A stretch of 64,000 nucleotides of DNA from Lepidodermella squamata (taxonomy: Eukaryota > Animalia > Gastrotricha): assembly GCA_047495785.1 (NCBI GenBank), contig JBLDXI010000018.1:248001-312000 (forward strand), given 5' to 3'. How positions within the stretch are numbered: the first letter of the stretch is position 1; each line of letters begins with the position of its first letter. Below are positions 2,654 through 61,100 of this stretch, piece by piece. The notes under the pieces were generated by a model. It was not told the origin of the DNA and searched no databases. It worked only from the letters and a program-made list of their open reading frames with translations. A program made the position numbers and the translations under genes.

Positions 2654-2726
2654 GGTTCCGTAGTGTAGTGGTTATCACGTCTCCTTCACACGGAGAAGGT
2701 CGCGGGTTCGAACCCCGCCGGAACCT
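2654..2726 (+). tRNA. tRNA-Val(CAC)
   Basis: GGTTCCG/CGGAACC acceptor, TCTCC-TTCACAC-GGAGA anticodon arm, GTTCGAAC T loop. Confidence 0.93.
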
Positions 2727-2804
2727 CGACTCTAGCCATGTTTTTTGCTGGCTGACTCTCCAATCGCTCATTCTAGAAATAGTCTGCTTTTTCTTGTACA
2801 ACAT

Positions 2805-2876
2805 GGGGATGTAGCTCAGTGGTAGAGCGCTTGCTTTGCATGTAAGATGTCCCGGGTTCAAACCCCGGCATCTCCA
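2805..2876 (+). tRNA. tRNA-Ala(TGC)
   Basis: GGGGATG/CATCTCC acceptor with G3:U70, CTTGC-TTTGCAT-GTAAG anticodon arm, oligo-T terminator follows. Confidence 0.94.
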
Positions 2877-2950
2877 ATTTTTTCAGCTTTTCAGGTCTCA
2901 GAATCTGCCACGTTCGATGGATAATCAATAAACCCAAGTTGACAGAAGGC

Positions 2951-2976
2951 GGCCCAGTGGCATAATGGTAAGGCGT
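2951..2976 (+). pseudogene. 5' fragment of tRNA-Arg(CCG) at a rearrangement junction
   Basis: GGCCCAGTGGCATAATGGTAAGGCGT matches the first 26 nt of intact Arg copies (one mismatch), then breaks off. Confidence 0.85.
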
Positions 2977-3374
2977 TTGGGTTTTTCGGAAATGAAGCAA
3001 GGCTGCCCGGTTTGCTTCATGCCTATGGTAAGGCTGCCCGGAAATGAAGCAAACTCGCTCCAAAAGATTATGCAAAGGTTCTACATGCGTTCAGTCACGA
3101 CAGCATTTTCAACTTTCGAAGCACATTTTCTATACCATTTGGAACTAGATCGATTGAAGTGTTCGGAATTACACCCAATTATATCAACCATGATTTCAAT
3201 CCAATTCAATCCAATTAGACTCCAAATTAGCATTAACCAAACCGAAGCTGAGCAATAGTAGCCAAGGTGTTCGTGATTCATCACCCCAACCTCAAGCCCC
3301 TCAAGCATTTTAATAAAAAATTGTTACGGCGAAAACCTCCTACAACTCTCAACTCTCAAGCTCTCACCATATAC

Positions 3375-3480
3375 GGCATGAAACATGCGTCACGTTAACA
3401 CGTTGACTCATTTGTCAGGTACGACGACCGTAACGCACGGCGTATAAAAAGTGAACAAGCGCGCCGTTTCATTCATTCAG
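3375..3480 (+). promoter_or_regulatory. Pol II promoter of the Cys-rich cassette gene (TGCGTCA, AP-1 TGACTCA, TATA box, Inr-like TCATTC)
   Basis: TGACTCA 3404-3410, TATAAAAA at 3443, TCATTC ~26 nt downstream. The block is nearly invariant in all three copies (also ~22149-22255 and ~57822-57925 minus). Confidence 0.7.
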
Positions 3481-3532
3481 CCAACAAGTCTTTTGTATAC
3501 TATCAAGTAAATCTAATCTACATCATCTAATC

Positions 3533-3940
3533 ATGTCAGTCATCGGCAGCAACAACTACAGGGCGAAAAGCGCGTCCCAGAGCGACATTGTGTCGGCCAT
3601 CTCGATGCCACAAGCAGCACCCGTTGTCGTGTACCAGCAACAGCAGGAAAAGAACAAAGGCTGCACGCGGAAAAAGTGTTTCATCGGCACGGCGCTGGGC
3701 GTGTTCTTCGGCCTGCTCGTGCTCGGCACCATCATCTACGTGGTGATGGTGGTGGAGTCGCAGTGCTACCGCGGCTGCCAGCGCCTGTGCACCGACGACA
3801 ACCACTGCACGGACACGTGCTGGAAGACGTGCTGGAAGGCGCAGTGGACCAAGTGCCCCGAGGACGGCGCCCGCGCCTGCTCCTACATCCTGTGGGACAA
3901 GGCCGTCATTAACATCGGCGGCCTCTTCGGCAAGAAGTAA
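3533..3940 (+). CDS. Orphan type II membrane protein with 8-Cys C-terminal domain, copy 1 (135 aa, intronless)
   Basis: Intact ORF with strong GC3 bias, one TM helix ([24 protein letters not shown]), C-x3-C-x3-C-x5-C-x3-C-x3-C-x7-C-x7-C, TATA upstream, AATAAA at 4121, conserved in 3 copies. Confidence 0.88.
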   Translation: MSVIGSNNYRAKSASQSDIVSAISMPQAAPVVVYQQQQEKNKGCTRKKCFIGTALGVFFGLLVLGTIIYVVMVVESQCYRGCQRLCTDDNHCTDTCWKTCWKAQWTKCPEDGARACSYILWDKAVINIGGLFGKK

Positions 3941-4204
3941 TCAGTCATCACTGTTCGCAATCACACGAGAATGGTTGACGAGTTGTTGCTCAGTCATTTG
4001 AAGCTACAACAGAATGCCGGAATCTCTTTTTAAGCTCACTTGAACAACTTGGTTCGGAAAACCGTCTTTGAATTATTTTTATACGATCATTATTTATAGT
4101 CAACTCAAATATTTTCAACAAATAAAGGAATTTTGTAATGCAATGCAAACTGTTTATTTACGGACAAACTTGGAAATGAGGTAATGAGACAGGACTATAA
4201 CGAC

Positions 4205-4276
4205 GGCCCAGTGGCCTAATGGTAAGGCGTCGGCCTCCGGAGCCGGAGATTGTGGGTTCGAGTCCCATCTGGGTCG
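4205..4276 (+). tRNA. tRNA-Arg(CCG)
   Basis: GGCCCAG/CTGGGTC acceptor, TCGGC-CTCCGGA-GCCGG anticodon arm, GTTCGAGT T loop. Confidence 0.93.
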
Positions 4277-4350
4277 AAATCTGTTTTTTCGATTTCAGGT
4301 TTCAAGCCAAAGACTTGATCAGCTTCAGTGAAACCAACATTCCATGAGCC

Positions 4351-4376
4351 GGCTCAGTAGAGCATCTGTCTTTGCA
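4351..4376 (+). pseudogene. Degenerate tRNA-Thr(TGT) remnant (also ~17921-17946, ~23135-23160, ~56895-56925 minus)
   Basis: GGCTCAGTAG-AGCATCTGTCTT is the intact Thr 5' half with the D arm deleted; same position in the unit (after Arg). Confidence 0.75.
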
Positions 4377-4503
4377 TATACTTGCATATAATAACAGATT
4401 TCTGTGTATATTTTTCTAACTGTCAGTTGAAGTCGACTGTCGATCAAAGCCAGTCAATTGATAAAGACCCAACTCTAGAAATGACCCAATTGCACCTCGA
4501 GCA

Positions 4504-4577
4504 GCCTCCTTGGCTCAGTTGGCTAGAGCGCCAGTCTCATAATCTGGAGGTCGTGAGTTCGATCCTCACAGGGGGCA
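4504..4577 (+). tRNA. tRNA-Met(CAT), elongator type
   Basis: GCCTCCT/AGGGGGC acceptor (G1:C72, not initiator A1:U72), CT-CAT-AA loop, GTTCGATC T loop. Confidence 0.93.
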
Positions 4578-5469
4578 GCTTAAATCTTTTTCTGTTTCAA
4601 TTCTGCATTTGGGACACACGCTTAAAAAAAGTCATGCAGTTGATTAAAAAGGGTCTGCCGCAATAATTAGGTAGCTCACCACTTTATCATAAATAAACCA
4701 TGTAATAATAAAAACGTGGGTACGTTTTTTCGGGTGTGTCTCATTTCTCTAGGGGAAGGTCACACCTCTCTGCCCCAGAAACCAATTTGGAATATATTCG
4801 TTGGAATATAAATGATTCGACAGATTGAAATTTACAACCGAATAAAAAACCAACTGAGTGACACTGCCGAGCTCAAAACTAACTTGCGGGAATCCCGGGC
4901 GTATCTTATTTTCCGCCTGAAACATCAGCTTTTTTCGTCCTGCTGCAATATTATTCACTTATGTAATTTCCACTCAAAATAATTCCCCCATCCTTCGAAT
5001 CAAATTTTGCTGGTTGTGCTGGTCAGCCTGGTCAGATTTTTCTCTTATTGGTAATTATTTTTGTTAGAATGGTTGGACTTTGTATTGTACCAGGACACAA
5101 ATAAAGATTTTTATGTTTTTATGTTTATATGCTTAACGTCAATTTTTTCTCTGCTAGCTTGTTTTCCAATATATGTTCCGTTTACACACTTCGCTTTAAT
5201 AATATTATGCCCCAGTAATTTTTCAACATTCAATACGACAAAAATTTGATAACATTTCAACCAGTTGCATACCTGCAGAAGCACGTTTTCTCGTCAGCTT
5301 TATTTTTATTACACCTAATTATCTGCAATAAACTTCACAATCATAGACCATTGAAGAAATCTGCTCTTGAATAATGAAACTATCATGGAACGATGAGTAA
5401 AGCTTGTTATTTATCGTGATAGCAGTATCTATCATCGACAGAAAGGTATTCATGTTATTTTGCTCAAAA

Positions 5470-8400
5470 TCAGTAACGGCCTTGGCCAATAGACGTGTCG
5501 CCTTTCTTGATTGTTGAAACAAATTGGGGCCAACGACCACCAGTGTCCTGAAGAAACATTTCAAAAAATAAATTGTTTTCCACACTTTGCAGCAAGTTTT
5601 CATCGGTCGATTGTAAACATTGCTGACTGAGGTTGAATGCTTCGCGATTTTCTTCAAAAAACTCTTTGTACCTGCGACACTCCTCAATCAATCCAGATGG
5701 CTGGGCTTCAGGAGTTCTCAGCGTTTTTCGTCTTGTATTTTCGTCGCCTTGGCTTAACATGTCGCATAATCGGTAAAGCGTTTCCATGATGCTGGACTGA
5801 TCCTTGACGATCAACGCGTGGTGCAATTGTTTCATAAGCAAAAAATTCAATCGAGCTGCCAACTGTACATGTTTCTGTTTTTCCTGTTCCAATTGCGCTT
5901 CGAGCCGATTCACGTCTCCACCGGTGGATTGAAGGACTTGCTCAGATTCTTCAACGATTTTCTGGAGGCCTTTGAGTGCCGCAGCCTTCTGCGTCGCATG
6001 AAGGATATGTTCACGTTCCGTAATTTTCTGCTTCAGCTGCTCGGATTCGTTTTCAAGCTTAAATAGTTCATCTTTCAACTGGAGAGCGCTGGCTTCTTCT
6101 CGACTACAGGAAACGTACAAGGAATAAATTTCAGCATTCAGGTTGACAATGGAGCTATCGTTCAAATCGATGTTGGGAATTTCATGAATTATCTTGAGAC
6201 AAGGATACGGTTTGGATCCATTGAAATCTAATTCGAACTGATAGCAAACGCGTTTTGAATCGCTGGCAGCCTTTGAAGAGAGCATTCGGAACTTTTGTCC
6301 TCGCAAAATCGCGCGGTACTTGCCACCTTGACGACTAGACATTAAAAGCTTGCGTTCTTCGCCGTTTCGAGGCGCAATATAGAAGTCTTTGGATATGAAC
6401 ACATGGTTCAACAGACTTGCTTTGTAGCCTGCCAAGTTATGCACTTGCTCGCTGCCATTTTCCTCATCAGCGTCCGTCATAGCTCGAACTTTTTCCAGCG
6501 CACGCTCGCCTGCACCTTGCTTCCAGTGCACCGTAGTTATTTTCGATTCTTTCTTGTAATCAATTTCATACAATATTTGTTCAGTGGAGCCTGTTGACAG
6601 TTCTTTGATTTTACCCTCGAGAATTTTCTGCTGCTGCCGTGCATCTGTTACATGGTCGGCAATCTCTGTCAGTTCAAGGCGGATAGCACTGATCCTGTTT
6701 TCCTTCGACTGCGCTTGAGCTTTCATCGCCATTACACCGCTTTCCAATGCCGAGGTGTTCTGTTGATTCATGGCTTGTATGAGCTGTTTCAATTCCTCTT
6801 CAACGTCTGCCGGGTCGCTACTTTTAAGCTGTTCCATCTTTCCTTTCGTCGATGCAACCTCTTCTATCAGTTGAGCCATCCTTTCTTTGGTTTTTTCAAC
6901 TTCAGATTGACAACGCTCGATTTCACTGGCCTTCTTCGATACTTCTGCTTTAGCTTTCGCGATATCAGACGGGAGGAGTTCTAGCATTCGCTGTAACACG
7001 TTCAGATTGGTGTGCGCTGAAAGATTGATGTAATGAGCCAATTGTTGCCTCAAATCGTCTCGCTCGAAAACATTATTGATATCAGTTTTTGAAATGCCAG
7101 GGCAAGACAAAAATTTCCGCAGCGTCTTCCGACGTTCCACCGTATTATCAATGTCAACAAAGACGACTTGTTTTCTTAGGTGCCATCTTAACAGAGCTTC
7201 CAATACGGAAATCCGGCTTCGAGTTTCCTCGGTATCACTGACCGCTGACTCTTTGAGCTGGCGTTCCAATTGAATCTTATTTTCTTTGAGTAGATCATTG
7301 ATTCGCATTTCAAAAAATTGTTCCGTTTCAAAAGGATCTTTCGCCTTCGTAACCAAAATGAAAACGGAATCTTTTGCCGTTGAGTTAGGGTCGAAAGCGG
7401 TGGGGAACATTTCTTGGAAAGATTGAATGTTATCAACCAGAAGACTTGAACGATTGGCGGCGAGAAGATTGTAATCAATAACAAGAACAGCAGCCCGAAT
7501 TTTAGCAGCAACCTGGATCGTCTGCTCAATGCTCAGCATCGCCAAGATTTGATAATTGATTCCACGCGTGTCGCTAAATCCAGGAGAATCCACAAATGAA
7601 CACTTATCAAAGTTTTCCCGGGGCAGTGACGCATTTTTGTCCCGACATAATTGCTTGATAACATCAGGTGGAATAGGAAACCCTTTGGTGAAAGCAGTTT
7701 CAGAAGTTCCCAAAGATTGTCCAATCTTCGCGATTGATGCGGGATCCAAATTTCTTTCATCGACTTGCAAAAAGACTTCGCCCAATCGTGTGTTTTGGAG
7801 AAAAGCATGATTCAAATAAAAATTGATGCAAGTGCTCTTGCCAGCGCCGGTGAGTCCAAGAAATAAAATCAGTTCTTTTCCCATAAGATCAGCAAGATTA
7901 TCCTTGAACTCATCGGACAGTGACATCGCTTTCATGACATCCAAGCTTTCTGGTCTCATTAGCCATCGCATGAAGTTGGCACGATGGATCAAAGGCTTGA
8001 AGACTTTACAAAAATCAACTTTGGCTGAGTTCACCTCATTGCCACGAACACTCGCATCAAGTTGCAAAACTGAAGCGACTTTGCGTCGAATTGCAGTCAT
8101 TAATGTATCATCGACGGGCGTTGATAGACTGTCCGATATGGCCGCATTGGCTTCTGTTTCAGTCTTTGTTAGCATAACTATCAGCAAACTGTTCAGCAAT
8201 CGATGCTTTGGATCCTGGAGAAGCAAGTTAACAATGTCATCCTGAAGCTCTTCGATCATTTCAAAGTTTCGTAATTTCATCTCGTCATTGGACACGATCT
8301 TCTCTCTGACAACAATTCTTTCTAGTTGACTTGTCTCCAAAGCAACCTCTTCCCATGCCAAAATCGTTAAACTACGGACGTCGTCGAAGGAGAAATCAGC

Positions 8401-9201
8401 CTTTTGACCATTGATGTGGAATAAATCCACCGAAACAATCGCTCCTTCACTTTCTTCGGTGCTGACTTTCAAATCGTAGACATTATTGCCCGAATGTTCA
8501 TCTGTTGCATGCAGTCTGAACTTAACAATAGCGTCATTTTGCTTATAACGGATAACCGATAAAAAAGCCGATAGAGGATTTTGATACGGGTCTGTCTCTC
8601 GAAGTCTCTCGATAGAATAGTGCCAGTTCCCGAAAATTGATCGCGATCGACTTTGCTGGGCAAACATGACTTTGTCCACTTTCTCCGTTTTATTGCAAAT
8701 CAGCTCTTGCAGGAAGTCGACCAAGTCGCGTTGCCTCGCTCGGGACATACTAATCCCACAGAACAAATTGTTTTGGGCTTTCATGAGAAGAGTCGCTTCA
8801 GTTTTCAGCCTCTCCTCCGCCTCCAATTTTAGTTCCCACTCAGTCTCATTGCCAGGGTTACAATGCTTTCGCACTTCCAGCACTTCATAATTCGCGTTTA
8901 TTGGAGCATCGAACTGCAAGACCTTCTCTTTAAGCTGGTCGGCATTTTCGATAATTAGCTCGTGCAACTTGCGAAGTCGGTGGGCTCTCATCATTTCCTT
9001 CACCACACTCGTCCAGTTGTCTTGCAACTGCTGCGACAACGTCGTCAGGTTTTCGTTGCCAACCTTCTGAGTTATGAACTCCACCATTTCAGTTATTTTT
9101 TGCTGATCCAGCTTTTTGAGAAGCTCGCGTCGAGTGTCTTCATTCCAAGACTTTATCAGCGGAATTTCAAGAAAACCCTTCAAATACTCGTTGCCAGACA
9201 T
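5470..9201 (-). CDS. Intronless ~1243-aa TRAFAC-class P-loop GTPase with long coiled coils (AIG1/septin/dynamin-like G domain)
   Basis: Uninterrupted 3.7-kb ORF (ATG at 9201). G1 GLTGAGKST, G2 SET, G3 DSPG(F-DTRG), G4-like TKAKD. Two heptad-rich segments flank a ~140-aa beta-rich insert. Confidence 0.85.
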   Translation of the reverse strand: MSGNEYLKGFLEIPLIKSWNEDTRRELLKKLDQQKITEMVEFITQKVGNENLTTLSQQLQDNWTSVVKEMMRAHRLRKLHELIIENADQLKEKVLQFDAPINANYEVLEVRKHCNPGNETEWELKLEAEERLKTEATLLMKAQNNLFCGISMSRARQRDLVDFLQELICNKTEKVDKVMFAQQSRSRSIFGNWHYSIERLRETDPYQNPLSAFLSVIRYKQNDAIVKFRLHATDEHSGNNVYDLKVSTEESEGAIVSVDLFHINGQKADFSFDDVRSLTILAWEEVALETSQLERIVVREKIVSNDEMKLRNFEMIEELQDDIVNLLLQDPKHRLLNSLLIVMLTKTETEANAAISDSLSTPVDDTLMTAIRRKVASVLQLDASVRGNEVNSAKVDFCKVFKPLIHRANFMRWLMRPESLDVMKAMSLSDEFKDNLADLMGKELILFLGLTGAGKSTCINFYLNHAFLQNTRLGEVFLQVDERNLDPASIAKIGQSLGTSETAFTKGFPIPPDVIKQLCRDKNASLPRENFDKCSFVDSPGFSDTRGINYQILAMLSIEQTIQVAAKIRAAVLVIDYNLLAANRSSLLVDNIQSFQEMFPTAFDPNSTAKDSVFILVTKAKDPFETEQFFEMRINDLLKENKIQLERQLKESAVSDTEETRSRISVLEALLRWHLRKQVVFVDIDNTVERRKTLRKFLSCPGISKTDINNVFERDDLRQQLAHYINLSAHTNLNVLQRMLELLPSDIAKAKAEVSKKASEIERCQSEVEKTKERMAQLIEEVASTKGKMEQLKSSDPADVEEELKQLIQAMNQQNTSALESGVMAMKAQAQSKENRISAIRLELTEIADHVTDARQQQKILEGKIKELSTGSTEQILYEIDYKKESKITTVHWKQGAGERALEKVRAMTDADEENGSEQVHNLAGYKASLLNHVFISKDFYIAPRNGEERKLLMSSRQGGKYRAILRGQKFRMLSSKAASDSKRVCYQFELDFNGSKPYPCLKIIHEIPNIDLNDSSIVNLNAEIYSLYVSCSREEASALQLKDELFKLENESEQLKQKITEREHILHATQKAAALKGLQKIVEESEQVLQSTGGDVNRLEAQLEQEKQKHVQLAARLNFLLMKQLHHALIVKDQSSIMETLYRLCDMLSQGDENTRRKTLRTPEAQPSGLIEECRRYKEFFEENREAFNLSQQCLQSTDENLLQSVENNLFFEMFLQDTGGRWPQFVSTIKKGDTSIGQGRY

Positions 9202-11211
9202 CTTGCTCAAGGCCCACTAAATTTTAATTAAAAAAACAAAACGATGAATAGGAACAATCAAGTGAACAATGTGGGAATCGAGGAGTTTTCTCGAAGAATT
9301 AATTTTGCAATCAATTAAGGGCTTTTGATTGGATAAATCGATGTGCAAAATAACATAATTAGGGTGACAATGTCCCTTAATTAGGGTGCATTTTTCTGGT
9401 GTATTATGAAACTATGCAAAGCCCAAGATTGAGCCGAAAAACTTGAATTTTAATTTTGCGGCCCAGTCTTGCATTCAGATCTGGACAAATTTAATCAAAC
9501 AATGTATTGTTCCTCAAATTTTCATGTTATTTTATCGAAATCTGAGCGGATGATGGCATTTTGAAAAATTTTCAAAAGAAACGGTTCATTAAGCCTGACT
9601 TGAATGGACAATTAACCTTTTACATTTCCTAGAATAAGAATGGTAGATTACTATAGAAATTTAACCCGTTGTAATAATTTTTCGATGGAGTTTTCGCATT
9701 TCTAAGCACTCAATGGCTTACTCTTTATGTACTCTTCATGTATGGCTTTTCCTAGCTTCCATTATTGCAAACAGAACTATTTTTTATTGTCAAGGCTGAT
9801 GGAAAATTACCTACTTTACATATCGAAATAAAGGGCGGTGCCAAAATAAAGGGCGCTCTGAATAGAGAGTAGGGTTGTGGGAAATTCGAAAAATTATAGG
9901 ACAGAACCGAAATAGGGGGCAGGCGCCTTTTCTCAATAATCCAAGAGTTGGCTAAAATCACGAGATAGAAATGCTCTAAATAAAGATTTTCGTAAATTCA
10001 TCGACAAATCTGAGTGGCGAAAGAGTATAACTAAGGCACAATCACACATTGCAACCAATTAGGAGCACGGAGTAACATTTTCTCTTCCGAGCACGGTAAA
10101 AAATCGAACGTAATTCTCGGCTCAAAACGACATTCCACAATTTTAATGGTGCGTTAGAAAGGCAACCGGTTCAAAGGGCGGGAAATTCCTCAAGTGGCCG
10201 TTATTTTTTTACTGGAAGCGGAAATGATTTGAGAACATGGGTCACTGGGTCAACAAGGTCAAAACTCGTAAATAAAAGAGCAACATGTACCTTTAAATCC
10301 GCTGGCCGAAGCTGTGATCGTTGAAGCTGTTTCCTTCAATTAATCAGTTACGTCCTAAAACACAAATCTCATTTAAAATTTGCTCATTGTGTTGTTTGCA
10401 TGGTGCATGGTCATTATTCTCATGAACTCAAGAACTGCCTCCAAGAGATCATCCATTGCGAATTTTCAGAGCTTAAAATGACGCTTGAAATTAAGCGATA
10501 TAAGAAAGCAAAAAGTCGGAATTTATCAATACACTAAGATGTGATTCATCGAAAAAAATCCTTCAACAGAGCCTTTGGAACGACGTGCTGCGTGCGCCGA
10601 GAACAGCACCTAAAATAGCTTGTGTTAGACCCACAGCTGAAAAGTCGGACACGATTTTTCGCAAACTGGCCGACCTTTCGACATCCGTCGTTTTTTGCAA
10701 AAAAAAGTGTTCATAACTGGCATCACTTCTAGCTTGTAGAACAGTAGAGAATTGAATAACGCTTTCTCAAATAAATTGTTGTCAGCCGGCCCGGTGATAG
10801 ATCCGCCCGCAAACTAAAATGACTAAGAAGCGCTAGTTGCAGCTCGGTACATCTCCTCGGGGAGCGTCTCATTTCTTGAGCCAAATCATCGCGTTACTCC
10901 CTCGGAAACGGCAATTCTTATCAAATTTGAAGTCGAAACTTCTCAATAGGAAATCACGCGATGTAGTTCCGCCTCGAAATCAAAAGGTCTATAACAGAGA
11001 TAAGTCATTTCAGAAAAATGTGTTGTCACTCAGGAACTCAACGCAAATTTACAACTGTTTCACGTATTGATAAAACAAGGCCATTTATTTTAGTTTCAGC
11101 AATCTATCTTTCTTTCTTTCTTTTATTCTTTATAAGTGTGTCGGAAAAGCCCAATCACAATAGCAACTATTCGCACTCTCAGCAGTCGACAACGTTCGCC
11201 ATCGAAGTCGC

Positions 11212-16430: not shown

Positions 16431-16502
16431 GGGGGCATAGCTCAGTGGTAGAGCGTCTCATTCGCATTGTGAAGGTCTCGGGTTCAATCCCCGATGCCTA
16501 TA
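16431..16502 (+). pseudogene. tRNA-Ala(CGC)-derived probable pseudogene
   Basis: A and B boxes present, TT-CGC-AT loop, but the acceptor 3' strand TGCCTAT and the anticodon stem are mismatched. Confidence 0.7.
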
Positions 16503-16619
16503 AATGGCAATTTTTTTAGAAATATTTCTTTCTACCTTTTACCGTTCAATGTTTAGAAATATCATAGAGAACGTAGTGATCTATGAGAAAAACAAAGTAA
16601 GACCGCCAAGTCACAGGCA

Positions 16620-16693
16620 GCCTCCTTGGCTCAGTTGGCTAGAGCGCCAGTCTCATAATCTGGAGGTCGTGAGTTCGATCCTCACAGGGGGCA
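16620..16693 (+). tRNA. tRNA-Met(CAT)
   Basis: Identical to 4504-4577. Confidence 0.93.
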
Positions 16694-16774
16694 GCGTTGA
16701 TCTTTTTCGATACAGCTCATAATGCAATAGCTTGCTCAAGACAAGACTAGATAGACATCGTGTTACCATGCACA

Positions 16775-16846
16775 TCCCTGATGGTCTAGTGGTTAGGATT
16801 CCGCGCTTTCACCGCGGCGGCCCGGGTTCGATTCCCGGTCAGGGAA
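16775..16846 (+). tRNA. tRNA-Glu(TTC), the only intact Glu copy
   Basis: TCCCTGA/TCAGGGA acceptor, CCGCG-CTTTCAC-CGCGG arm, oligo-T terminator. Confidence 0.94.
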
Positions 16847-16916
16847 CTTTTTTAATAAATGAGTCGAGCGGGAACCAAGCTTCAAAGAAGATCGGAATCT
16901 TCTTCTTCACAAGCCA

Positions 16917-16989
16917 GGTTCCGTAGTGTAGTGGTTATCACGTCTCCTTCACACGGAGAAGGTCGCGGGTTCGAACCCCGCCGGAACCT
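16917..16989 (+). tRNA. tRNA-Val(CAC)
   Basis: Identical to 2654-2726. Confidence 0.93.
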
Positions 16990-17064
16990 TGATCCAAGCT
17001 GTTTTTGGCTGGCTGACCTATCTAGACGAGCTATTGTAGAGACAGTTCGCCTTATCTTCTACAT

Positions 17065-17136
17065 GGGGATGTAGCTCAGTGGTAGAGCGCTTGCTTTGCA
17101 TGTAAGATGTCCCGGGTTCAAACCCCGGCATCTCCA
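17065..17136 (+). tRNA. tRNA-Ala(TGC)
   Basis: Identical to 2805-2876. Confidence 0.94.
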
Positions 17137-17198
17137 ACTTTTTTATCGTTTCAGGTCTGTCAGAATCCGACACCTCCGATCTCCAATGCATAATTGAA

Positions 17199-17505
17199 TA
17201 CCGTATTTTACGAATTATAAGACCCTGCCCTGTATTTTTTTCAAACGAGGTTCAAGTCCTGCCCTGTATTTAGGGTCTGCCCTTTAATTCGGCTCTGCCC
17301 TGTAATTTTTTCGAACCTAATCAGTCACCTGAACAGTACCTAGATCAACAGTTATAACCGCCGAATAACCGCACTATAGCTACTGCCTTCCACCTGTGAC
17401 TACACGCGTGAAGTGAGTGCTCAAATGGATTAGGGTGGATAAAGGACGATTAGTGCACTTACTGACGAAAAATCGCAACCTATCCAACTTTAACCACTTA
17501 CCCAG
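17199..17505. mobile_element. ~300-bp insertion between Ala and Arg, starting with a DNA-transposon-like end (Tc1/mariner-pogo-like)
   Basis: Absent from the equivalent spacers at 2877-2950 and 58767-58839. Begins TA-CCGTATTTT...TATAAGAC, followed by four CTGCCCT(G/T)TA subterminal repeats. No matching other end found. Confidence 0.55.
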
Positions 17506-17511
17506 CAAGGC

Positions 17512-17583
17512 GGCCCAGTGGCCTAATGGTAAGGCGTCGGCCTCCGGAGCCGGAGATTGTGGGTTCGAGTCCCATCTGGGTCG
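17512..17583 (+). tRNA. tRNA-Arg(CCG)
   Basis: Identical to 4205-4276. Confidence 0.93.
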
Positions 17584-17656
17584 ATAAATTTTTAGATTCC
17601 ACGGATATTACCAAAGAACAGGAGTTTCAGTGTGGCATTTCTTCATCAGTTCAGCC

Positions 17657-17728
17657 GGCTCAGTAGCTTAGTGGTAGAGCATCTGTCTTGTAAACAGAAG
17701 GTCGCGGGTTCGATCCCCGTCTGGGCCT
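17657..17728 (+). tRNA. tRNA-Thr(TGT)
   Basis: GGCTCAG/CTGGGCC acceptor, TCTGT-CTTGTAA-ACAGA arm, GTTCGATC T loop. Confidence 0.93.
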
Positions 17729-17821
17729 CGGCATACCTTTTTTTCCAGACTGGGGCTTTTGAGCTTGACCTATCAAATCTCAAGGAATCACTTATGGGAT
17801 AACCAAGGGCGACTTCAAGCG

Positions 17822-17847
17822 GCCTCCTTGGCTCAGTTGGCTAGAGC
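17822..17847 (+). pseudogene. 5' fragment of tRNA-Met at a rearrangement junction
   Basis: GCCTCCTTGGCTCAGTTGGCTAGAGC, then switches into post-Arg spacer sequence. Confidence 0.85.
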
Positions 17848-18073
17848 CAAAGACTTGATTGACTTCAGGTTTCAAGCCAAAGACTTGATCAGCTTCAGTG
17901 AAACCAACATTCCATGAGCCGGCTCAGTAGAGCATCTGTCTTTGCATATACTTGCATATAATAACAGATTTCTGTGTATATTTTTCTAACTGTCAGTTGA
18001 AGTCGACTGTCGATCAAAGCCAGTCAATTGATAAAGACCCAACTCTAGAAATGACCCAATTGCACCTCGAGCA

Positions 18074-18147
18074 GCCTCCTTGGCTCAGTTGGCTAGAGCG
18101 CCAGTCTCATAATCTGGAGGTCGTGAGTTCGATCCTCACAGGGGGCA
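18074..18147 (+). tRNA. tRNA-Met(CAT)
   Basis: Identical to other Met copies. Confidence 0.93.
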
Positions 18148-18689
18148 GCAACGATATTTTTATGAGTGATACAGCGTGTCCTATCGGCATCGGAAGCGAA
18201 TCATTCAGGCAGTTGCAGGGGCTCTAGCAACTTTAACGATTTAAATCACGCTATAATCATCTTCCTTCTTCTCGTGCAATTTATGTTGCAGGATTAGATG
18301 GGGGAACAGGGCACATTTGGCACTCTCCTGATTTAGGCCTGCTCTTCTTGGTGTCATAAATACCTCTTAACAAAAAGCCATCTCCCTCGGAAACCATGTA
18401 CTTCCTTCGGCGCCATATATTGAAACTGGTGTCACCCCAATATTAAGTAGTGAGGTTCTATACCGCCGATGCTACTTACAGGTAAAAGCATGCGTGTGTG
18501 TGCATAGCGCATAATATCTAGGTACATATTACATGTGAGAACTTTTTTCTCTTTCGTTGAATGGGTTATCTTTAGTTCGTATGGAAAACACACTGCAGTG
18601 AATTGAATGTCTAGCAAAAGCCACAGCCCCTTTCTCTGGAATTCTTCCATTTAAGGAAAATTGACAGTAAGGTAAGATCCTAAAAAGAA

Positions 18690-20367: not shown

Positions 20368-20606
20368 TAACTCTCAGCTCTGCAATCATAAAGCAATTAG
20401 CAATTTCCAACCCTCCGTTTTCTACTTTTTCTGAATAAGCATTAATATAGGCGCCTTTGATGGACTACCGATGTTATCTAAATAGAAAATCGATAAATTG
20501 TTATACCTGAGGAACAGAAGTCTCATGATCGAAGTCCGACTAAAATCCGGAAGCGTGATTTCTGGAACTCGAGACACCGATTATCTAATCCTGTTTCAAA
20601 AAGCAT

Positions 20607-20678
20607 TGGAGATGCCGGGGTTTGAACCCGGGACATCTTACATGCAAAGCAAGCGCTCTACCACTGAGCTACATCCCC
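20607..20678 (-). tRNA. tRNA-Ala(TGC)
   Basis: Reverse complement of the Ala copies. Confidence 0.93.
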
Positions 20679-20826: not shown

Positions 20827-20895
20827 TGGCTGTTTTCAGGAATTTTCATTCTTGCTTGGAGACTTGGATTCTTTTGATTGCAGACTTCAAAACGT

Positions 20896-52100: not shown

Positions 52101-55100
52101 CGATTGCCGATGATGCCCAACGCGATTTGGACGAGGCGCTGCCAGCTTTGGAAGAATCTCTCAGGGTAAGTCTCGAATTCGTTTAATTGATTGAAAAATC
52201 GATCGAAATTCGCATCTCAAGTTGTTTAGAATTGTATTTGAAATTGAATATGTCCCTAATCTTGTTATTTTTCAGGCTCTCGATGCGCTGGACAAGAACG
52301 ATATTTCTGAAATCCGTGTCTTCAAAACACCGCCCGAGTTGGTACAGACCGTCATGGAAGCTGTCTGCCTGCTTCTTGGTGCCAAGTAAGTAAAACCATG
52401 ATTTTTAGTCCCAATTCTTTCAATTGCTTCTGTAAATTCGTTGATAAGATTGCATTTGAAAATTAGAATTTTGCAATTTTTGATGATTTATTTTACGATT
52501 TTAGGCAAGATTGGAAATCTGCTCAGGGTGTTTTGGGCGATCCCTATTTCCTAAAACGCCTAGTCGAGTACGATAAAGACCACATCTCACAGCCCGTGCT
52601 TCAAAAGCTGAAGAAATACATCGACAACCCGCGTTTCACGCCCGAAGCTGTCGAAAAAGTATCTCGAGCTGCGAAATCGCTGTGCATGTGGGTGCGCGCT
52701 ATGGACAAGTACTCGTTCGTGTTCAAGACTGTGCAGCCGAAGAAGGAGAAATTAGCAGCGGCTCAGGCTGAATTGGACGCTGTAATGTCTACTTTGAGGG
52801 ATAAGCAACAGAAATTGGCTGATGTCGAGGCGCAAATCGCTGCGCTACAGCAAGCCTACGACGAGTCGGTTGCCGAGAAAAAACGACTTGAGGTAAAATA
52901 ATTATTTTAAACTGATGAAATGCGTTGAAAATTGTGGAAAATATTCAATTTTTATATTTCTGAAATAATTGAAATTTAAAAAATGAAAATTCATTTCCGA
53001 ATTTTTACAAATTTCTAGGATTTGACGTTCAAAGTTGCAATTTGAATTTATTTTTTATCTAGATTAATATTGCAACTACCCAAGCTCGTTTACGCCGTGC
53101 GGGTAAGCTGACAACCGCGCTCAGTGACGAACAAGGTCGTTGGAAGGAGTCGATCGAGCGCTTCAACAAGGAACTCGGCGATGTAGTGGGCAATGTGTTC
53201 GTATCAGCGGCCTGCATTGCCTACTATGGCGCGTTCACGTCTAATTATCGCGTTGAATTGGTCGAGCGATGGACTCATCGATGTGCCGAACTTGAACTGC
53301 CCATCACACCTGGCATGACGCTGGTCTCGGTCATGGCCGATCCGTTCGAAGTCCGCCAATGGAATGCCGATGGACTGCCTCGAGATCAGGTAAACCTTTA
53401 AACTCATCCTAAATGTTTGTCCAAACAACATTCACTCTTCGAAACGATTCTATTGGCTTTTCTTGGCGTCTCCGAACTTTTTGAGAACGGCTCAAATTTG
53501 GGACATATTTTGATCAAAGTCTGATCTGATATCGCTTGAATTATTTAGCGTGGTATGGGAAATTTCAATCCAATTTGAGAAATTCTGAGCCATTTTTGAT
53601 CGCAACTTGATCTGGTTCTTTTAATTTGATCGACATTTGATCGATTATACATCAATTTTGATGTTTTGATCATTATTTGAATTTATCTGTGGTCAGCTTT
53701 GATCTGCGTTTGATGTTTTTCGAATCGATAGTTTATTTTTGAAAATTTGATCCGAATCACTTATAAATGTCATTTTCCGATTTTTCAAGGTATCGACTGA
53801 AAATGCAATTTTGGCGACGCGATCCCGCCGCTGGCCCCTCTGTATTGACCCTCAAGAGCAAGCAAATCGTTGGATTCGTAACCGCGAGAACAAGAACAAC
53901 TTGCGTGTCATGAAGCTGACTGAATCTGGATTTTTGCGGCACCTTGAAAATTGCATCCGAGTCGGTATACCAGTTCTCATGGAAGATATCGGCGAGCAGT
54001 TGGATCCATCCCTTGAACCAATCCTCCTCAAACAAACTTTCAACAGCGTAAGCTATAAATTGAAATATAATGTTTTCAAAATATTTCTTTTTGTAATTTC
54101 TCGCTCATTCATTTGATTTGTTTGACTTTTCAGTTTTACAAAAGGGTCGACAATATATTTGATGCATACAAGAATAAATCTTCAGGAGTAATAACAATAT
54201 TGCATATTACATATAGCCTTAAATCGTTACAATAATCGTCTCGTGACTTTGATGTTAGATTTTATTAGAAAAATACTCGTTATAGTGGTCTGCCTTTATG
54301 GGATTTTGCATGCTGCGGTATCAAATATTGGAAAGATTCCGTTGAAGATTGATGCGAAATGGGAATTTTAGCAATTTCTTGTAGTTTTTTTAATTTTTGT
54401 TTGGGCATGAAAAAGTATTGAATTAATATTTTTCTTTAATATTATAGCTAGATTCATTTTTTGTTAAATTTCATAGTATATTAGATCAATTTTTTCAATG
54501 CCACTAAATTTTCTTTATTATTTGAAAATACAGGGTGGTCGGTTGTTGATCCGCCTCGGCGATACCGATGTCGACTACGATCGAAATTTCAAGTTTTACA
54601 TGACCACAAAATTGTCAAACCCGCATTACCTACCCGAAGTGTCGATCAAAGTCACAATCATCAACTTCACCGTAACAAAATCCGGCCTCGAGGACCAAAT
54701 TCTCAGCGACGTAGTCCGCATCGAACGGCCAGATTTGGAGGAGCAGCGCAACCAACTGATCGTTAAAATCAACTCGGATAAAGTCCAGCTGAAATCGATT
54801 GAAGACAAAATTCTTCGAATGCTGTTCGAATCTGAGGGGAATATTTTAGACAACGAAGAGCTGATTAATACGTTGAATGAGTCGAAAGTCACGTCTCAGT
54901 TAATTGGCCAGCGTGTTAAAGACGCCGAGGCGAACGAGGTTAAAATCAACGCGGCCCGTGAAAAATACCGACCAGTCGCCACCCGCGGCTCGGTTATGTA
55001 CTTCGTAGTCGCGAATATGGCCGAAATCGACCCGATGTACCAATTTTCGTTGAAATACTTCAAAAATCTCTTCAACCTCACGATTGAACAAGCGCCGAAA

Positions 55101-58100
55101 TCTGACGATTTGGAGGAGAGGTTGGAAACCCTGATCAACGCAACGACCCTAGCCGTGTATAAAAACGTGGCTCGAGGGTTGTTTGAAAAAGATAAATTGG
55201 TCTTCTCCTTCGTGTTATGCATCGACATTTTGAAGCAAGCCGGGTTAGTTTCGAATACTGAGTGGAACTTTTTCCTGCGTGGGCTAGCCGGGCAGGTGAT
55301 TGACCGCCCGCCGGTACCCGAAAACGTGCCGTGGTTAACGCAAACGGTCTGGAACAATTTGTACGATTTGAGCGAGACAATTCCTGAGCCGTTCAAAAAC
55401 ATCCATCTCGAGGCGGTGAACAACCCTATCATGGTTCAGCTGGGTAATATGACGATCAGGGTGAACCCGGAGAAGTGGGAGGGTTACCAGGGCCCAGCGC
55501 CGGAGCAGCCCTGGAATGAGAAACTCACCCCCTTCCAGAAATTGATGTTACTGAAAGCGGTTAAGGAGCAGCAAACTGTTATGGCTGTCACTGAATTTGT
55601 GCGATCGGTTCAGGGTCAAGCTTTTGTCGAAAGTCCAGCCTCGGATCTGCCGACGCTGTACGAAGATACGGACAACGTGACGCCGTTAGTTTTCGTGTTA
55701 TCGCAGGGTTCCGACCCTATGGGCGCCTTTTTGAGGTTCGCCAAGGAGCGCAATTATTCCGAGCGGGTTCAGTCCATCTCGCTGGGCCAGGGTCAGGGTC
55801 CAGTTGCGGAGAGGCTGATCACGGCTGCGGCGAAATCGGGCGATTGGGTGTTCCTGCAGAATTGCCACTTGGCGCAGAGTTGGATGACGGCGCTGGAGAA
55901 TTTGGTCAAGGACATGGCGGAGACGCCGAAGAACGTGCACCCGGATTTCAGGCTCTACCTGTCTTCGATGCCGGCTGGCCATTTCCCGATCGCGGTACTT
56001 CAGAACAGTGTCAAGGTGACTAACGAGCCGCCGAAGGGCCTGAGAGCAAATATCAAGGTGAGTGGAAAAAAATATTTTTTGAAAACTCGTGAAAAATTAA
56101 AAACACTTTTTAATTTCAAGCATTCTGAATAATGCTTTGTTTGAGGGTGATAATGCCTTTTCTACATTTTCAAATTATTTGCGTCTGTTTTGGACGGTGT
56201 CGATCTTTTCAGAAACTTTTCCTCTTGGTACATTTTGAAATATTGTGAAGATTCAAAATTAGGCTCTGGATGCTAAACATGATCGATAAGTAAAAAGTTG
56301 GAGATGCCGGGGTTTGAACCCGGGACATCTTACATGCAAAGCAAGCGCTCTACCACTGAGCTACATCCCCATGTTGTAAAAGAAAAAGCGGACTATTTCT
56401 AGAATAGAGCGATTGGAGAGTCAGCCATCCAAAAAACATGGCTAGAGTCGAGGTTCCGGCGGGGTTCGAACCCGTGACCTTCTCCGTGTGAAGGAGACAT
56501 GATGACCACTACACTACGGAACCTGGCTTGAAAAAGATAATGATTCCGATCTTCTTTGAAGCTTGGATCCCGCGAGATTTGCTAGTAGAAAAAGTTCCCT
56601 GCCCTGGCCGGGAATCGAACCCTGGCCATGGCGACTTCTTTTGTATATGTTCTTGAGTCGATCCATAAATAATGTGCCCAATCGAAAAAAGATTGAAGCT
56701 GCCCCCTGTGAGGATCGAACTCACGACCTCCAGATTATGAGACTGGCGCTCTAGCCAACTGAGCCAAGGAGGCTGCCTGATGTCGAAGTGTGCCATTTCA
56801 GGAGTTGGGTCGTCATTAATTCAGTGATTGGTTTTGATAGAGAGTCAGAAAAATATATGCAAATCTTACCCGGAACCTTCTGTTTATACAAGAATGATGC
56901 TCTAGTGCTAAGCCACTGAGTCGGCTGATGAAAAACGGATAGATTGAAACTTTTCTAGTCTTTGTTTTGAACCCTGAAATCGAAAAATGTTATCGACCCA
57001 GATGGGACTCGAACCCACAATCTCCGGCTCCGGAGGCCGACGCCTTACCATTAGGCCACTGGGCCGTCGTGGTAGTCCTGTCTCATTACCTCATTTCCAA
57101 GTTTGTTCGTAAATAAGCAGTTTGCATAGCATTATAAAATTCCTTTATTTGTGGAAAATATTTGTTTTGACTATAAATAATGATGACGCATCGTCTAAAA
57201 TGATTCAAAGACGTTTTTCCGAACTTCAAGTGAGCTTAACATGAGATTCCAGCGCATTCCAATGTAGCTTGTTCTAAAGACTGAGCAACTCGTCGGCCAT
57301 TCACTCGGTTGTTGTGTGATTCTGAAATGTGATGACTGATTACTTCTTGCCGAAGAGGCCGCCGATGTTGATGACGGCCTTGTCCCACAGGATGTAGGAG
57401 CAGGCGCGGGCGCCGTCCTCGGGGCACTTGGTCCACTGCGCCTTCCAGCACGTCTTCCAGCACGTGTCCGTGCAGTGGTTGTCGTCGGTGCACAGGCGCT
57501 GGCAGCCGCGGTAGCACTGCGACTCCACCACCATCACCACGTAGATGATGGTGCCGAGCACGAGCAGGCCGAAGAACACGCCCAGCGCCGTGCCGATGAA
57601 ACACTTTTTCCGCGTGCAGCCTTTGTTCTTTTCCTGCTGTTGCTGGTACACGACAACGGGTGCTGCTTGTGGCATCGAGATGGCCGACACAATGTCGCTC
57701 TGGGACGCGCTTTTCGCCCTGTAGTTGTTGCTGCCGATGACTGACATGATTAGATTGCGAATGTAGATTAGATTTACTTAATAGTGTATACAAAAGACTT
57801 GTTGGCTGGTGGTGGTTGACTGAATGAATGAAACGGCGCGCTTGTTCACTTTTTATACGCCTCGCGTTACGGCCGTCGTACCTGACAAGTGAGTCAACGT
57901 GTTAACGTGACGCATGTTTCATGCCGTATATGGTGAGAGCCTGAGAGTTGTTGTAGGAGGCTCTCGCCGTAGCGATTTTTTATTAAAATTCTTGAGGGGC
58001 TTGAGGTTGGGGTGATGAATCACGAACACCTCAGCTACTATGTATTGCTCAGGCTTCGGTTTGGTTATTACTAATTTGCAGTCCAAGGTGACATAAAAAT

Positions 58101-61100
58101 TGGATTGAAATCATGCTAGACATAATTGCATGTAATTCCGAACACCTCAATCTATCTAGTTCCAAATGTTATAGAAAATGTGCGTGGAAAGTTGAAATGC
58201 TGCCGCGACTGAACGCATGTGGAACTTTGGCCTAATGTTGAAGCAAGCTTGCTTCATTTCCGGGCAGCCTCCTTGGCTCAGTTGGCTAGAGCGCCAGTCT
58301 CATAATCTGGAGGTCGTGAGTTCGATCCTCACAGGGGGCAGCTTCGATCTTTTTCGATTGAACTCAACATGTGAATAGATCTCCTCAGGAAAGAGTCGAT
58401 ACACGTCGTATGGGCCATGCGCATGGATTAGTATTCTGCGCTTTCACCGCAGCAACCCGGGTTTGAGTTTTAGGGAAGCTTTGACGTCTGCAATCAAAAG
58501 AATCCCACTTTCCAAGCAAGAATGAAAACCTCTGAAAACAGCAAGGTTCCGTAGTGTAGTGGTCATCACGTCTCCTTCACACGGAGAAGGTCGCGGGTTC
58601 GAACCCCGCCGGAACCTCGATTCAAGCTATGATTTTGGTCTGCTGATCTATCTAGATAAGCTATTCTAGAGACAGTTCGCTTCGTCTTCTACATGGGGAT
58701 GTAGCTCAGTGGTAGAGCGCTTGCTTTGCATGTAAGATGTCCCGGGTTCAAACCCCGGCATCTCCAATTTTTAAGCTTTTCAGGTCCCAGAATCTGTAAC
58801 CTCCCATGGATAATCGATAATTCTAAGTTGAAAGAAGGCGGCCCAGTGGCCTAATGGTAAGGCGTCGGCCTCCGGAGCCGGAGATTGTGGGTTCGAGTCC
58901 CATCTGGGTCGATAATTTTTATATTCCACGGATATAGCCAAAGAACAGGAATTTCAGTGTGGCATTTCTTCATCAGTTCAACCGGCTCAGTAGCTTAGTG
59001 GTAGAGCATCTGTCTTGTAAACAGAAGGTCGCGGGTTCGATCCCCGTCTGGGCCTCGGCATACCTTTTTCCAGACTGGGGCTTTTGAGCTTGACCTATCA
59101 AATGTGATGACCTCACTTCTCTGATAACCAAGGGCGACTTCAAGGCCTCCTTGGCTCAGTTGGCTAGAGCGCCAGTCTCATAATCTGGAGGTCGTGAGTT
59201 CGATCCTCACAGGGGGCAGCTACAATTTTTTTCCAGCAGCTCCCAAAATATCCGTGCCCCGTGCCCCAGATCCCAATTTTCGAACTGCACACTGAATCAA
59301 GATTAAAAGAACTCGATGTTACCGGGTATATGCACCTGTGCATTTCCATTGGTATTTTTCACGAAATTTAAAAAAGTTCATCTTGCGCCGAAATATTATT
59401 CAACTCTAATGGCTATGCTTTGCTATTTGCAGCGCGCCTTTAACGAGCTGGACCAGTCGTTCTTCGAGGACCACATCCTGATGGGCGAGTGGCGGCGCAC
59501 GGTGTTCGGCATCTGCTTCTTCCACGCCATCATCCAGGAGCGCAAGAAGTTCGGCCCGCTCGGCTGGAACATCAAGTACGAGTTCAACGACTCGGACCGC
59601 GAGTGCTGCCTGCTCAACCTGGAAATGTTCACGCGAAGCGGCGAGTGGCCGTGGGACGCGCTCGTCTACATCACCGGCGAGATCACGTACGGCGGGCGTG
59701 TCACCGACTACTGGGACCAGCGGTGCTTGCGCACGGTTTTGAGGCGATTCTTTGGACTCCACGCCCTGTCTAAAAGTTACCGTTTCTCAGAATCAGGCAA
59801 GTTTAAATTTTTCAGGAAAAATTGGATGTTGGATGAAATTTAAAATTGATGAATTTTTTTTAATTTTCTTGAATTTTAAATAATCTTGAAAATATAATTG
59901 AAAATTGAAAACGAGGCCTTCGTTTTATTGCCGATTTTTATAGGAACCTATTTCGCTCCTGAGTTCGAATCGCTTCAGCAGTACAAGGATTATATCGAAG
60001 CGTTGCCGCTTATCGACAATCCCGAAGTTTTCGGCATGCACGAAAACGCAAACATTTCATTCCAGCTGCAAGAAACCGGCGCGATGGTCAACACCATTCT
60101 TAGCGTTCAGCCACGCGTGTCCAGCGGCGAGGGTGGCAAGTCGAACGATGACATTGCCTACGAACAGGCGGATGTTATCTTGGAGAAAATACCAGCTAAA
60201 ATTGACATCGATGCGGCGAGACCTGAAATTTTCGAGGTAATTTTAGATTATTATTTGATTCAATATTTCGCGTTCAAATCGAGATCGAATTAACATCGGT
60301 AATTTTAAGTTATATTCTCACTGTTGTATCAACTTTGGCGTGAATTCACTCATATTATGATCAAATATTGATCAAACCTCTTGTTAATAAACTTCCATCG
60401 TCTTGTTTGCAAGGTTAAAAACGGTATTTGATCCAACTGTCAATTTTAATTGAACGATTATTGATTCATTTTTGATGCTATAATTTCTCAGATTCTATTT
60501 GAGGTAAGTGTACGAGCAGTTTCAACGGGTAGCCAGCTTGTTATATTTTAATAGTCAATTTAAATTTCATCATACAAATATTTCATTTTATAATCATGGA
60601 AATATGTGCAAATTTAACTAACAGCAACTTCATGACGAAGAGAAATCGCATGAATTCACTTCATCATATTTTATTTAAAAATTCAGATTAATTTGGACTC
60701 TTCTTATCTTAATTTTCGATTTTTTCAACTATTTTTAGAAAGACGATATGGACCGCCAACATTCGCTGACGACGGTACTTCTGCAAGAAGTCGAACGCTA
60801 CAACAAGCTTTTACGGCTAATTAGAGTAAGTACATCGACTTTGAAAATTTTGAAAGTCCTAATTTTATATTTTAATCTTGATTTTTAATAATATTTTTTT
60901 CGTTATTTCAGTCTTCATTGGATCAACTGAAGAAGGCCATCAAAGGTTTCGTGGTGATGTCAGAAGAGCTCGAGCGCATCTACGTGGCTTTCCTCAACAA
61001 CCAAGTGCCAGCTCGGTGGGGCGCGGCGGCGTACCCGTCGCTGAAAACGCTCGCCTCGTGGGTGAAGGACCTCGTGCTTCGCATCGATTTCATGACCAAC

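Follow-up and report, generated by a model that had tools for sequence, protein, structure and literature searches.

A tRNA gene cluster of the gastrotrich Lepidodermella squamata and the local duplication of a small protein-coding gene within it

Results and discussion

In a 64-kb stretch of the genome of the gastrotrich Lepidodermella squamata (GenBank assembly GCA_047495785.1, contig JBLDXI010000018.1, positions 248,001 to 312,000; subsequently referred to as the window), all 27 tRNA genes are grouped into four short arrays (A1 to A4), and three of these enclose a copy of the same intact protein-coding gene. We consider it probable that the arrays make up a fragile and rapidly evolving tRNA cluster, shaped by local segmental and inverted duplication, deletion and exchange, and that the small gene, called passenger gene in this text, was carried along. 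A new class of mobile element is not established by these observations; they are a new instance of a known process. An earlier reading of the same DNA (the original prediction) had instead proposed a discrete, transposase-free composite cassette in which the tRNA genes supply portable homology, perhaps also insulation, and time and again carry a gene that is ready for expression to new, unrelated loci.

Four arrays cut from one cyclic order

ARAGORN and Rfam (RF00005) returned identical sets of tRNA genes, with nothing extra found by Rfam. The genes belong to six amino-acid types, are separated by spacers of mostly 70–350 bp and span 2654-4577 (A1, plus strand), 16431-18147 (A2, plus strand), 20607-23367 (A3, mixed orientation) and 56297-59218 (A4, mixed orientation). 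This is the composition of a heterogeneous tRNA cluster, that is, at least two tRNA genes of different acceptor type not more than 1 kb apart. The Rfam scores of 53–72 bits (against a gathering score of 29), the canonical tRNA fold and a run of at least four T residues within 30 nt downstream of all 27 genes make them look like functional units of RNA polymerase III (Pol III), as far as fold and terminator can tell. Two genes score lower than their siblings and may be decaying: a tRNA-Val at 56450-56523 (three mismatches, 58.5 versus 68.4 bits) and a tRNA-Met at 23291-23367 (one mismatch, 57.3 versus 65.2 bits).

When the seven tRNA types of A2 were used as BLAST queries, all arrays proved to be cuts of one cyclic order, Met-Glu-Val-Ala-Arg-Thr-Met, and the tRNA genes were ~100% identical from array to array. 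The original prediction had described the four arrays as permutations of one tRNA unit, and both the gene set and the cyclic order bear this out. The array without the passenger open reading frame (ORF), A2, extends over 16431-18201 on the plus strand and reads Ala(CGC), Met, Glu, Val, Ala(TGC), a 330-bp insert, Arg, Thr, a 5' fragment of Met (nt 1-26, at 17822-17847), a Thr relic (ψThr) and Met; its extra Ala(CGC) gene had been missed in the original prediction. The only intact Glu gene lies here (16775-16847), together with one of the two intact Thr genes (17657-17729; the other is at 58984-59056). Further remnants are Glu relics (ψGlu) at 21333-21368, 56602-56627 and 58428-58463, and ψThr relics, with cores at 4357-4372, 17927-17942 and 23141-23156, which are placed between Arg and Met in A1, A2 and A3. 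The ~330-bp insert of A2 (17178-17506) between tRNA-Ala and tRNA-Arg is unique and contains four copies of a 14-nt motif, and we found no terminal inverted repeats (TIRs) in it. The Ala-Arg spacer of A4 measures 71 nt, as compared with A2, where the insert lies.

A1 (2613-4592, plus strand) consists of tRNA-Val(CAC) at 2654-2727, tRNA-Ala(TGC) at 2804-2877, a 5' fragment of tRNA-Arg (nt 1-27, at 2950-2976 on the plus strand, 96% identity over 27 nt), a short filler, the first gene module (c1) and a plus-strand group at 4204-4577 made up of tRNA-Arg(CCG) (4204-4277), ψThr and tRNA-Met (4504-4577). A3 (20598-23414) is of mixed orientation: Ala, Val, a miniature inverted-repeat transposable element (MITE), ψGlu, the copy of a piece of a dynein gene and a tRNA-Met (21738-21811), its tRNA genes and ψGlu on the minus strand, are followed on the plus strand by module c2 and, at 22992-23367, by tRNA-Arg (22992-23065), ψThr and tRNA-Met (23291-23367). 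A4 (56291-59233, mixed) is situated inside an intron of a dynein heavy-chain gene. On the minus strand it carries Ala, Val, ψGlu, Met, ψThr, Arg and the third copy of the ORF (c3), after which Met, ψGlu, Val, Ala, Arg, Thr and Met follow on the plus strand. At its outer sides, 56291-56777 and 58263-58773 are imperfect inverted copies of each other, ~480 bp long and made of Met-ψGlu-Val-Ala.

A gene-bearing block present three times

Self-BLAST revealed a repeated block of ~1.6 kb (3031-4591, 21808-23379 and 58270-56686) at 87–92% identity, which contains in this order a TATA box, an intact ORF, an AATAAA signal, tRNA-Arg, the Thr relic and tRNA-Met. The original prediction had noted a shared module of ~1.2 kb in three arrays. 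Its promoter, intronless ORF, polyadenylation signal and Arg-ψThr-Met are present in all three, but the block is longer than had been thought because Arg-ψThr-Met was duplicated along with the gene. The gene modules proper occupy 3031-4203 (c1, plus strand; upstream region with TATAAA at -90, ORF and 3' region with AATAAA at 4121), 21812-22991 (c2, plus strand) and 57067-58266 (c3, minus strand). TATAAA stands 90 or 110 nt upstream of the ATG and AATAAA 181–191 nt past the stop codon, and both are kept in all three copies.

Within the block, identity is 78–95% in the flanks and ~100% in the ORF (c1, 3533-3940, plus strand, 135 aa; c2, 22327-22725, plus strand, 132 aa; c3, 57340-57747, minus strand, 135 aa). 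The proteins of c1 and c3 are identical and their genes differ at a single synonymous site, while c2 differs from c1 by in-frame indels amounting to three codons, one non-synonymous and three synonymous changes. The flanks of the three ORF copies differ by 5–22%. This divergence, together with specific indels, also bears on the suspicion that the repeats were collapsed or falsely duplicated during assembly. Arrays of tRNA genes are hard to assemble, and the near identity of the genes between arrays would invite such errors. However, each copy lies in a unique and coherent gene context, including an intact pair of dynein exons, and one copy contains a private MITE insertion with its target site duplication (TSD), so that we regard an assembly artefact as very improbable.

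The three copies lie at 3.5, 22.3 and 57.3 kb in the orientations plus, plus and minus, with 18 and 34 kb of unique genes between them. All of them fall within 57 kb of one chromosome, and such proximity is what local duplication, segmental or inverted, should produce. Promoter, 3' region and spacers were duplicated together, in A3 along with a dynein fragment, which is the pattern of a DNA-mediated segmental duplication. The marks of a retrogene are lacking: the promoter region and the downstream tRNA genes were copied along, and no A-tract follows the AATAAA. The intronless state is a trait of the whole passenger gene family.

The left edge of the block in A3 and A4 coincides with the 5' end of an inverted tRNA-Met, and inverted tRNA-Met copies of 95–99 nt bracket the block head to head in two of the three cases. 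Left module ends that coincide with tRNA genes, as originally predicted, are found in A3 and A4; c1 has no inverted Met, and its left edge is filler.

Junctions record the direction of copying

The clearest trace of how the arrays arose is the dynein piece in A3 (21485-21737, minus strand). It is 92% identical to the native intron end and exon start of the dynein gene at 59219-59464 (plus strand) and comprises, in 246 bp, the last ~210 nt of the intron, the splice acceptor and the first ~33 nt of the exon, where the similarity ends. Copying hence took place at the DNA level and in the direction from A4 to A3, and one of the breakpoints is located inside an exon, not at a tRNA gene. In A3, the dynein fragment and the block meet at one and the same tRNA-Met (21723-23379 matches 58355-56686, and 21485-21811 matches 59464-59145). 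In A4, the fragment follows the Met gene at 59145-59218 and the block adjoins the one at 58267-58340. Since these are different genes, A3 is a recombinant across two identical Met genes that are ~800 bp apart. This Met-Met exchange is a genuine use of a tRNA gene as homology.

The left junction of c1 is of another kind. Here, the truncated tRNA-Arg is followed by a filler of ~50 nt (2977-3030, plus strand) assembled from direct local copies of 14, 12 and 10 nt and one inverted copy of 11 nt, and a 4-nt microhomology, AGGC, is common to tRNA-Arg and the 5' end of the inverted tRNA-Met. These features are the hallmark of template switching, or else of end joining that inserts templated sequence, and not that of transposition or of recombination over long homology. 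Inside A2, nt 26 of the truncated Met is joined to the spacer that normally follows Arg, a deletion within a once longer tandem array.

Altogether, three junctions cut within tRNA genes, and two kinds can be told apart, namely exchange in identical tRNA genes and microhomology with templated filler. As in segmental duplications, the junctions involve pre-existing repeats or microhomology and filler, and no TSDs. As to how array DNA reached its four sites, the junctions with templated sequence suggest copying in the course of replication or break repair.

The arrays keep exchanging sequence

Informative sites in the block form a mosaic. Copies c2 and c3 agree over 3151-3524 and 3910-4076 (coordinates of c1), all three are identical over 3654-3909, and c1 agrees with c2 over 4307-4500, the switch of nearest relative falling in the stretch from AATAAA to tRNA-Arg. 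Other segments link the arrays crosswise: 4291-4579 in A1 is 99.65% identical to 17861-18149 in A2, the Val-Ala pairs of A2 and A3 are 98% complementary, and the Val-Ala pair of A1 has its nearest match in the left arm of A4 (94.5%). The mosaic and the cross-linked segments imply that the arrays keep exchanging sequence. Val-Ala tRNA pairs in inverted orientation (16912-17144 and 20599-20831, 98% complementary) lie on both sides of the P450 gene (~18.2-20.4 kb) and are a ready substrate for its inversion.

The original prediction depended on breakpoints not being random with respect to tRNA genes. We located 34 of 53 homology end-points inside a tRNA gene or at most 20 nt from one, and 19 elsewhere, while tRNA genes and these margins make up 32% of the array bases; the end-points are not independent, however, and conserved tRNAs anchor alignments, so that the enrichment is partly an artefact. 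We take it only as consistent with tRNA-associated breakage. The idea of tRNA genes as portable homology is partly right: they act as homology or as break sites in the Met-Met exchange in A3, in the mosaic switch near tRNA-Arg and in the three junctions inside tRNA genes.

Marks of mobile elements and a nested MITE

Among 23 ORFs of the window with at least 110 aa, a Pfam search found no transposase, reverse transcriptase, Rep/helicase or integrase domain, a result that bears on functions encoded in cis only. At the array ends, no TSD was detected (the longest k-mers shared by left and right sides are 5–6 nt and not adjacent to the ends), nor any TIR (12–24 of 60 positions match in inverted register). 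Within the window, the Pfam scans and the comparison of array ends confirm what the original prediction had said about the absence of these marks. The inverted tRNA-Met genes do not have the distribution of the TIRs of a Class II or composite transposon, since they flank the block in only two of its three copies.

A true insertion is nested in A3 (20896-21312). This MITE-like element of 417 bp has TIRs of 27 nt that are 96% complementary and the 8-bp direct repeat CAAAACGT at both sides, and is hAT-like. The paralogous spacer of A4 (~58455-58520) represents the empty site. The MITE was therefore inserted after the duplication from A4 to A3 and is not part of a cassette. It also provides an internal control: true transposon insertions leave classical marks in this genome, and the arrays, which have none, are unlike them.

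The MITE shows that the genome holds an active-looking DNA transposon derivative, and one might therefore ask whether arrays and gene are carried by some larger transposable element, for instance a Helitron, a Maverick/Polinton or a DNA transposon of another type. We hold this to be extremely unlikely. Signs of Helitron or Maverick capture (Rep/helicase, polymerase B/integrase, or sequence shared beyond the arrays in the self-comparison) were not found within the 64 kb, and the scanned ORFs are housekeeping genes or without a transposon domain, including the 1246-aa ORF next to A1, a P-loop and coiled-coil protein. In addition, the array ends are bare of TIRs and TSDs, and the MITE sits in one copy only. 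An enclosing element, which the original prediction had named as a threat to its own proposal, is thus not seen in the window.

The passenger gene and its family

The passenger protein starts with a disordered N-terminus, followed by a basic CTRKKC motif, one membrane helix and a C-terminal domain of 60 residues with eight cysteines, and is predicted from this layout to be a small, cysteine-rich, single-pass membrane protein. The only Pfam hit was Podoplanin at E=0.15, which is under the cut-off, and a profile search against the PDB gave no match at E≤1. A full HMMER scan of 1.84 billion representative proteins returned only 12 relatives, all unnamed and all from eukaryotic contigs of ENA metagenomes. 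Their alignment has ten invariant columns, six of them Cys. In the AlphaFold model computed from this 12-sequence alignment (pLDDT 58.7), the membrane helix alone is confident. Metagenome contigs of JGI yielded no match to the passenger family or to the dynein exon adjoining A4, and a search of IMG/VR was likewise without match, hence giving no sign of a viral origin. Looking up the window's own ORF and the SIKE protein as exact sequences also returned nothing, so that the genome is absent from the protein collection.

All homologues come from one eukaryote in four ENA metagenome assemblies (ERZ23486764, ERZ23486787, ERZ27332993 and ERZ27333047). Its contig L012 (1-5961, ERZ23486787) is collinear with 38933-30716 of the window at 60–78% amino-acid identity, across the LARGE, HIT and ADP/ATP carrier genes and two more. 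This collinearity shows the organism to be a true relative. It carries the passenger family at four separate loci, two of them with tandem paralogues. One (L001-L004) has two tandem paralogues (L001 619-1050 and 2021-2404) between a PAP2 gene and a kinase gene, another (L008-L011) has three adjacent members (L010 9042-10390), a third (L006/L007) adjoins an F-box gene, and L005 also holds a family member.

No tRNA gene was found on any of the relative's contigs with family members, nor on L012 and L013. It follows that duplication in this family needs no tRNA flanks, and the association with tRNA genes is specific to the genome of L. squamata. Gene copies without tRNA flanks are what the original prediction had itself named as counter-evidence, and they do occur, though in another species. 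They bear directly on the composite cassette, for which a number of observations can be cited: the head-to-head tRNA-Met genes around two of the three blocks, the inverted repeat at the outer parts of A4, the enrichment of homology end-points near tRNA genes, the four different gene contexts of the arrays, and the promoter and polyadenylation signal that travel with the ORF. However, the ends vary from copy to copy, with an exon breakpoint in one case and microhomology plus filler in another, c1 has no inverted Met, A2 contains the unit without the gene, and the end-point enrichment is inflated by tRNA conservation. With no ends in common, all copies within 57 kb, and homologues in the relative, tandem paralogues included, free of tRNA flanks, a discrete element that disperses the gene to unrelated loci is not borne out, and we judge the composite cassette to be improbable.

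Expression and copy number of the passenger gene

The G+C content at third codon positions (GC3) of the passenger ORF is 0.90, as opposed to 0.39–0.65 in neighbouring genes and ~0.37 in the homologues of the related species. The RPL13A exon in the window reaches 0.84. Because the passenger gene resembles this nearby ribosomal-protein exon, it is probably highly expressed, codon bias being the simplest reading of its composition. GC-biased gene conversion as the sole cause is weakened by the RPL13A value, but conversion among the copies may add to the effect.

These features could also mean that selection for more copies of the passenger gene drove the amplification, the tRNA cluster being merely the fragile setting from which the duplications came. 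All three ORFs are intact, the differences of c2 being confined to in-frame indels and one amino-acid change, and TATA box and AATAAA are conserved; in the relative, too, the family is present in multiple copies. On the other hand, A2 and the right half of A4 were duplicated without the gene, and the conservation could equally reflect gene conversion. We see dosage selection as a possible driver, albeit a rather doubtful one.

A model for the origin of the arrays

In the reading that we favour, a fragile cluster with a passively carried gene, a nuclear tRNA cluster with the unit Met-Glu-Val-Ala-Arg-Thr would have gone through local copying, inversion and truncation and would have become homogenised in part, all by processes acting at the DNA level. 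A small gene transcribed by RNA polymerase II (Pol II) would have been situated between Ala/Met and Arg of one unit variant (Arg-ψThr-Met) and carried passively, giving rise to three intact copies. The breaks may have come from tRNA genes that stall replication forks, with repair by template switching, break-induced replication or end joining. Gene conversion, strong selection at the codon level, or both, could have kept the ORFs nearly identical, and extra copies of a probably highly expressed gene may have been tolerated or even favoured.

Several points weigh against this interpretation. The identity of the ORFs is by itself no proof of gene conversion and cannot separate conversion from selection, since strong codon bias could also suppress synonymous change. 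The four arrays are scattered between housekeeping genes that have nothing in common, and A4 fills an intron of the dynein gene, which means that array DNA was inserted at new sites. Simple unequal crossing-over leaves such insertion unexplained. Moreover, the analysis comprised 64 kb of one assembly, and copies elsewhere in the genome lie beyond its view.

Insertion at new sites would be accommodated if the array units, whether or not they include the passenger gene, acted as a recombination-driven, self-templating insertion cassette whose pieces end up in breaks that open in genes and introns close by. For example, it is possible that pieces are excised or copied from a tandem array, perhaps via circular intermediates, which would account for the circularly permuted cuts of one unit. 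Clusters of tRNA genes would then be a general vehicle that works without a transposase and by which highly expressed Pol II genes are spread in company with chromatin boundaries of their own. We give this version little credence and prefer the fragile cluster with local duplication.

Genes surrounding the arrays

Multi-exon genes of the window (dynein, LARGE, P450 and ADP/ATP carrier) were searched exon by exon. The window contains an RPL13A-like exon (11.2-11.7 kb), genes for a short-chain dehydrogenase (SDR), a SIKE-family protein, a P450 (19.5-20.4 kb), a cyclophilin (23.7-24.5 kb), an ODC antizyme, a HIT protein, a LARGE-like glycosyltransferase and an ADP/ATP carrier (ANT), and an axonemal-type dynein heavy chain that extends from 41.3 kb to beyond 61 kb. 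A1 adjoins the 1246-aa ORF, A2 lies between SIKE and P450, and A3 where the P450 and cyclophilin genes face each other with their 3' ends. A4 occupies the intron between the dynein exons at 54498-56132 and 59431-59843 (both plus strand; the start of the latter is deduced from the splice acceptor), and this intron would measure ~350 bp without the array.

The 1246-aa ORF (5470-9210, minus strand) is uninterrupted and has a P-loop (GxxGAGKS) and long coiled coils. It matched no Pfam family and no PDB sequence, and probably encodes a lineage-specific NTPase. The ANT exon is 64–75% identical to those of many animals, and the LARGE-like exon is ~35–39% identical to all metazoans alike, with one metagenome match at 60%. 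The best protein matches thus spread over animals at large, and the source is a non-human animal to which no sequenced species is close. Exons in the window are large and introns mostly shorter than 0.8 kb. Over the whole window, the observed/expected ratio of CpG is ~1.2, a value suggesting that CpG sites in the germline of this animal are methylated little or not at all.

Comparison with known systems

The window offers a natural example, resolved to the base, of a tRNA cluster reshaping its neighbourhood, with tRNA genes acting both as homology for exchange and as sites of breakage. A fragment of a host exon records the direction of copying, and a complete protein-coding gene was amplified as a by-product. 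A further outcome is an animal protein family, uncharacterised so far, whose members are small, rich in cysteine and cross the membrane once. When we looked in the literature for protein-coding passengers in tRNA repeat units, only papers on mitochondrial genomes surfaced.

The human variable number tandem repeat (VNTR) of tRNA genes at 1q23.3 has a multi-tRNA unit, many repeats, an unstable copy number and a suggested role as boundary or insulator (Darrow and Chadwick 2014, PMC4041453). It is built of strictly tandem 7.3-kb units at a single locus, and no protein-coding passenger is described in the abstract, whereas the window has four short arrays of mixed orientation among genes. Template switching at inverted repeats can amplify genes without a transposase (PMC11790251). 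This process, ODIRA (origin-dependent inverted-repeat amplification), shares with the window inverted junctions at short inverted repeats, transposase-free amplification and secondary rearrangements. Its product, however, is a contiguous triplication whose middle copy is inverted, and our copies are separated by unique genes and oriented plus, plus, minus.

Segmental duplications in yeast arise by replication-based repair (break-induced replication, BIR, or microhomology/microsatellite-induced replication, MMIR), and their breakpoints show microhomology and fall in or at tRNA genes (Payen et al. 2008, PMC2518615). One of the microhomologies described there was located inside a tRNA-Ala(UGC) gene, and tRNA genes were proposed as fragile sites. 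As in the window, the events take place at the DNA level and have junctions in dispersed repeats or in microhomologies of a few nucleotides, comparable to AGGC in the tRNA-Arg described here. They were selected in the laboratory and encompass tens to hundreds of kb, whereas the pieces in the window are 2–3 kb, natural and reshuffled several times.

Clusters of tRNA genes are known to turn over fast and have been proposed to be linked with the pausing of replication forks and with instability (Bermudez-Santana et al. 2010, PMC2888827; Rogers et al. 2010, PMC2997554). The heterogeneous clusters described in these surveys resemble the arrays of the window in that different tRNA genes lie at most 1 kb apart, mostly in parallel, accompanied by relics or pseudogenes and with poor synteny. 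The surveys cover tRNA content, not passengers; in the window, by contrast, one variant of the unit carries a complete Pol II gene that was co-duplicated three times.

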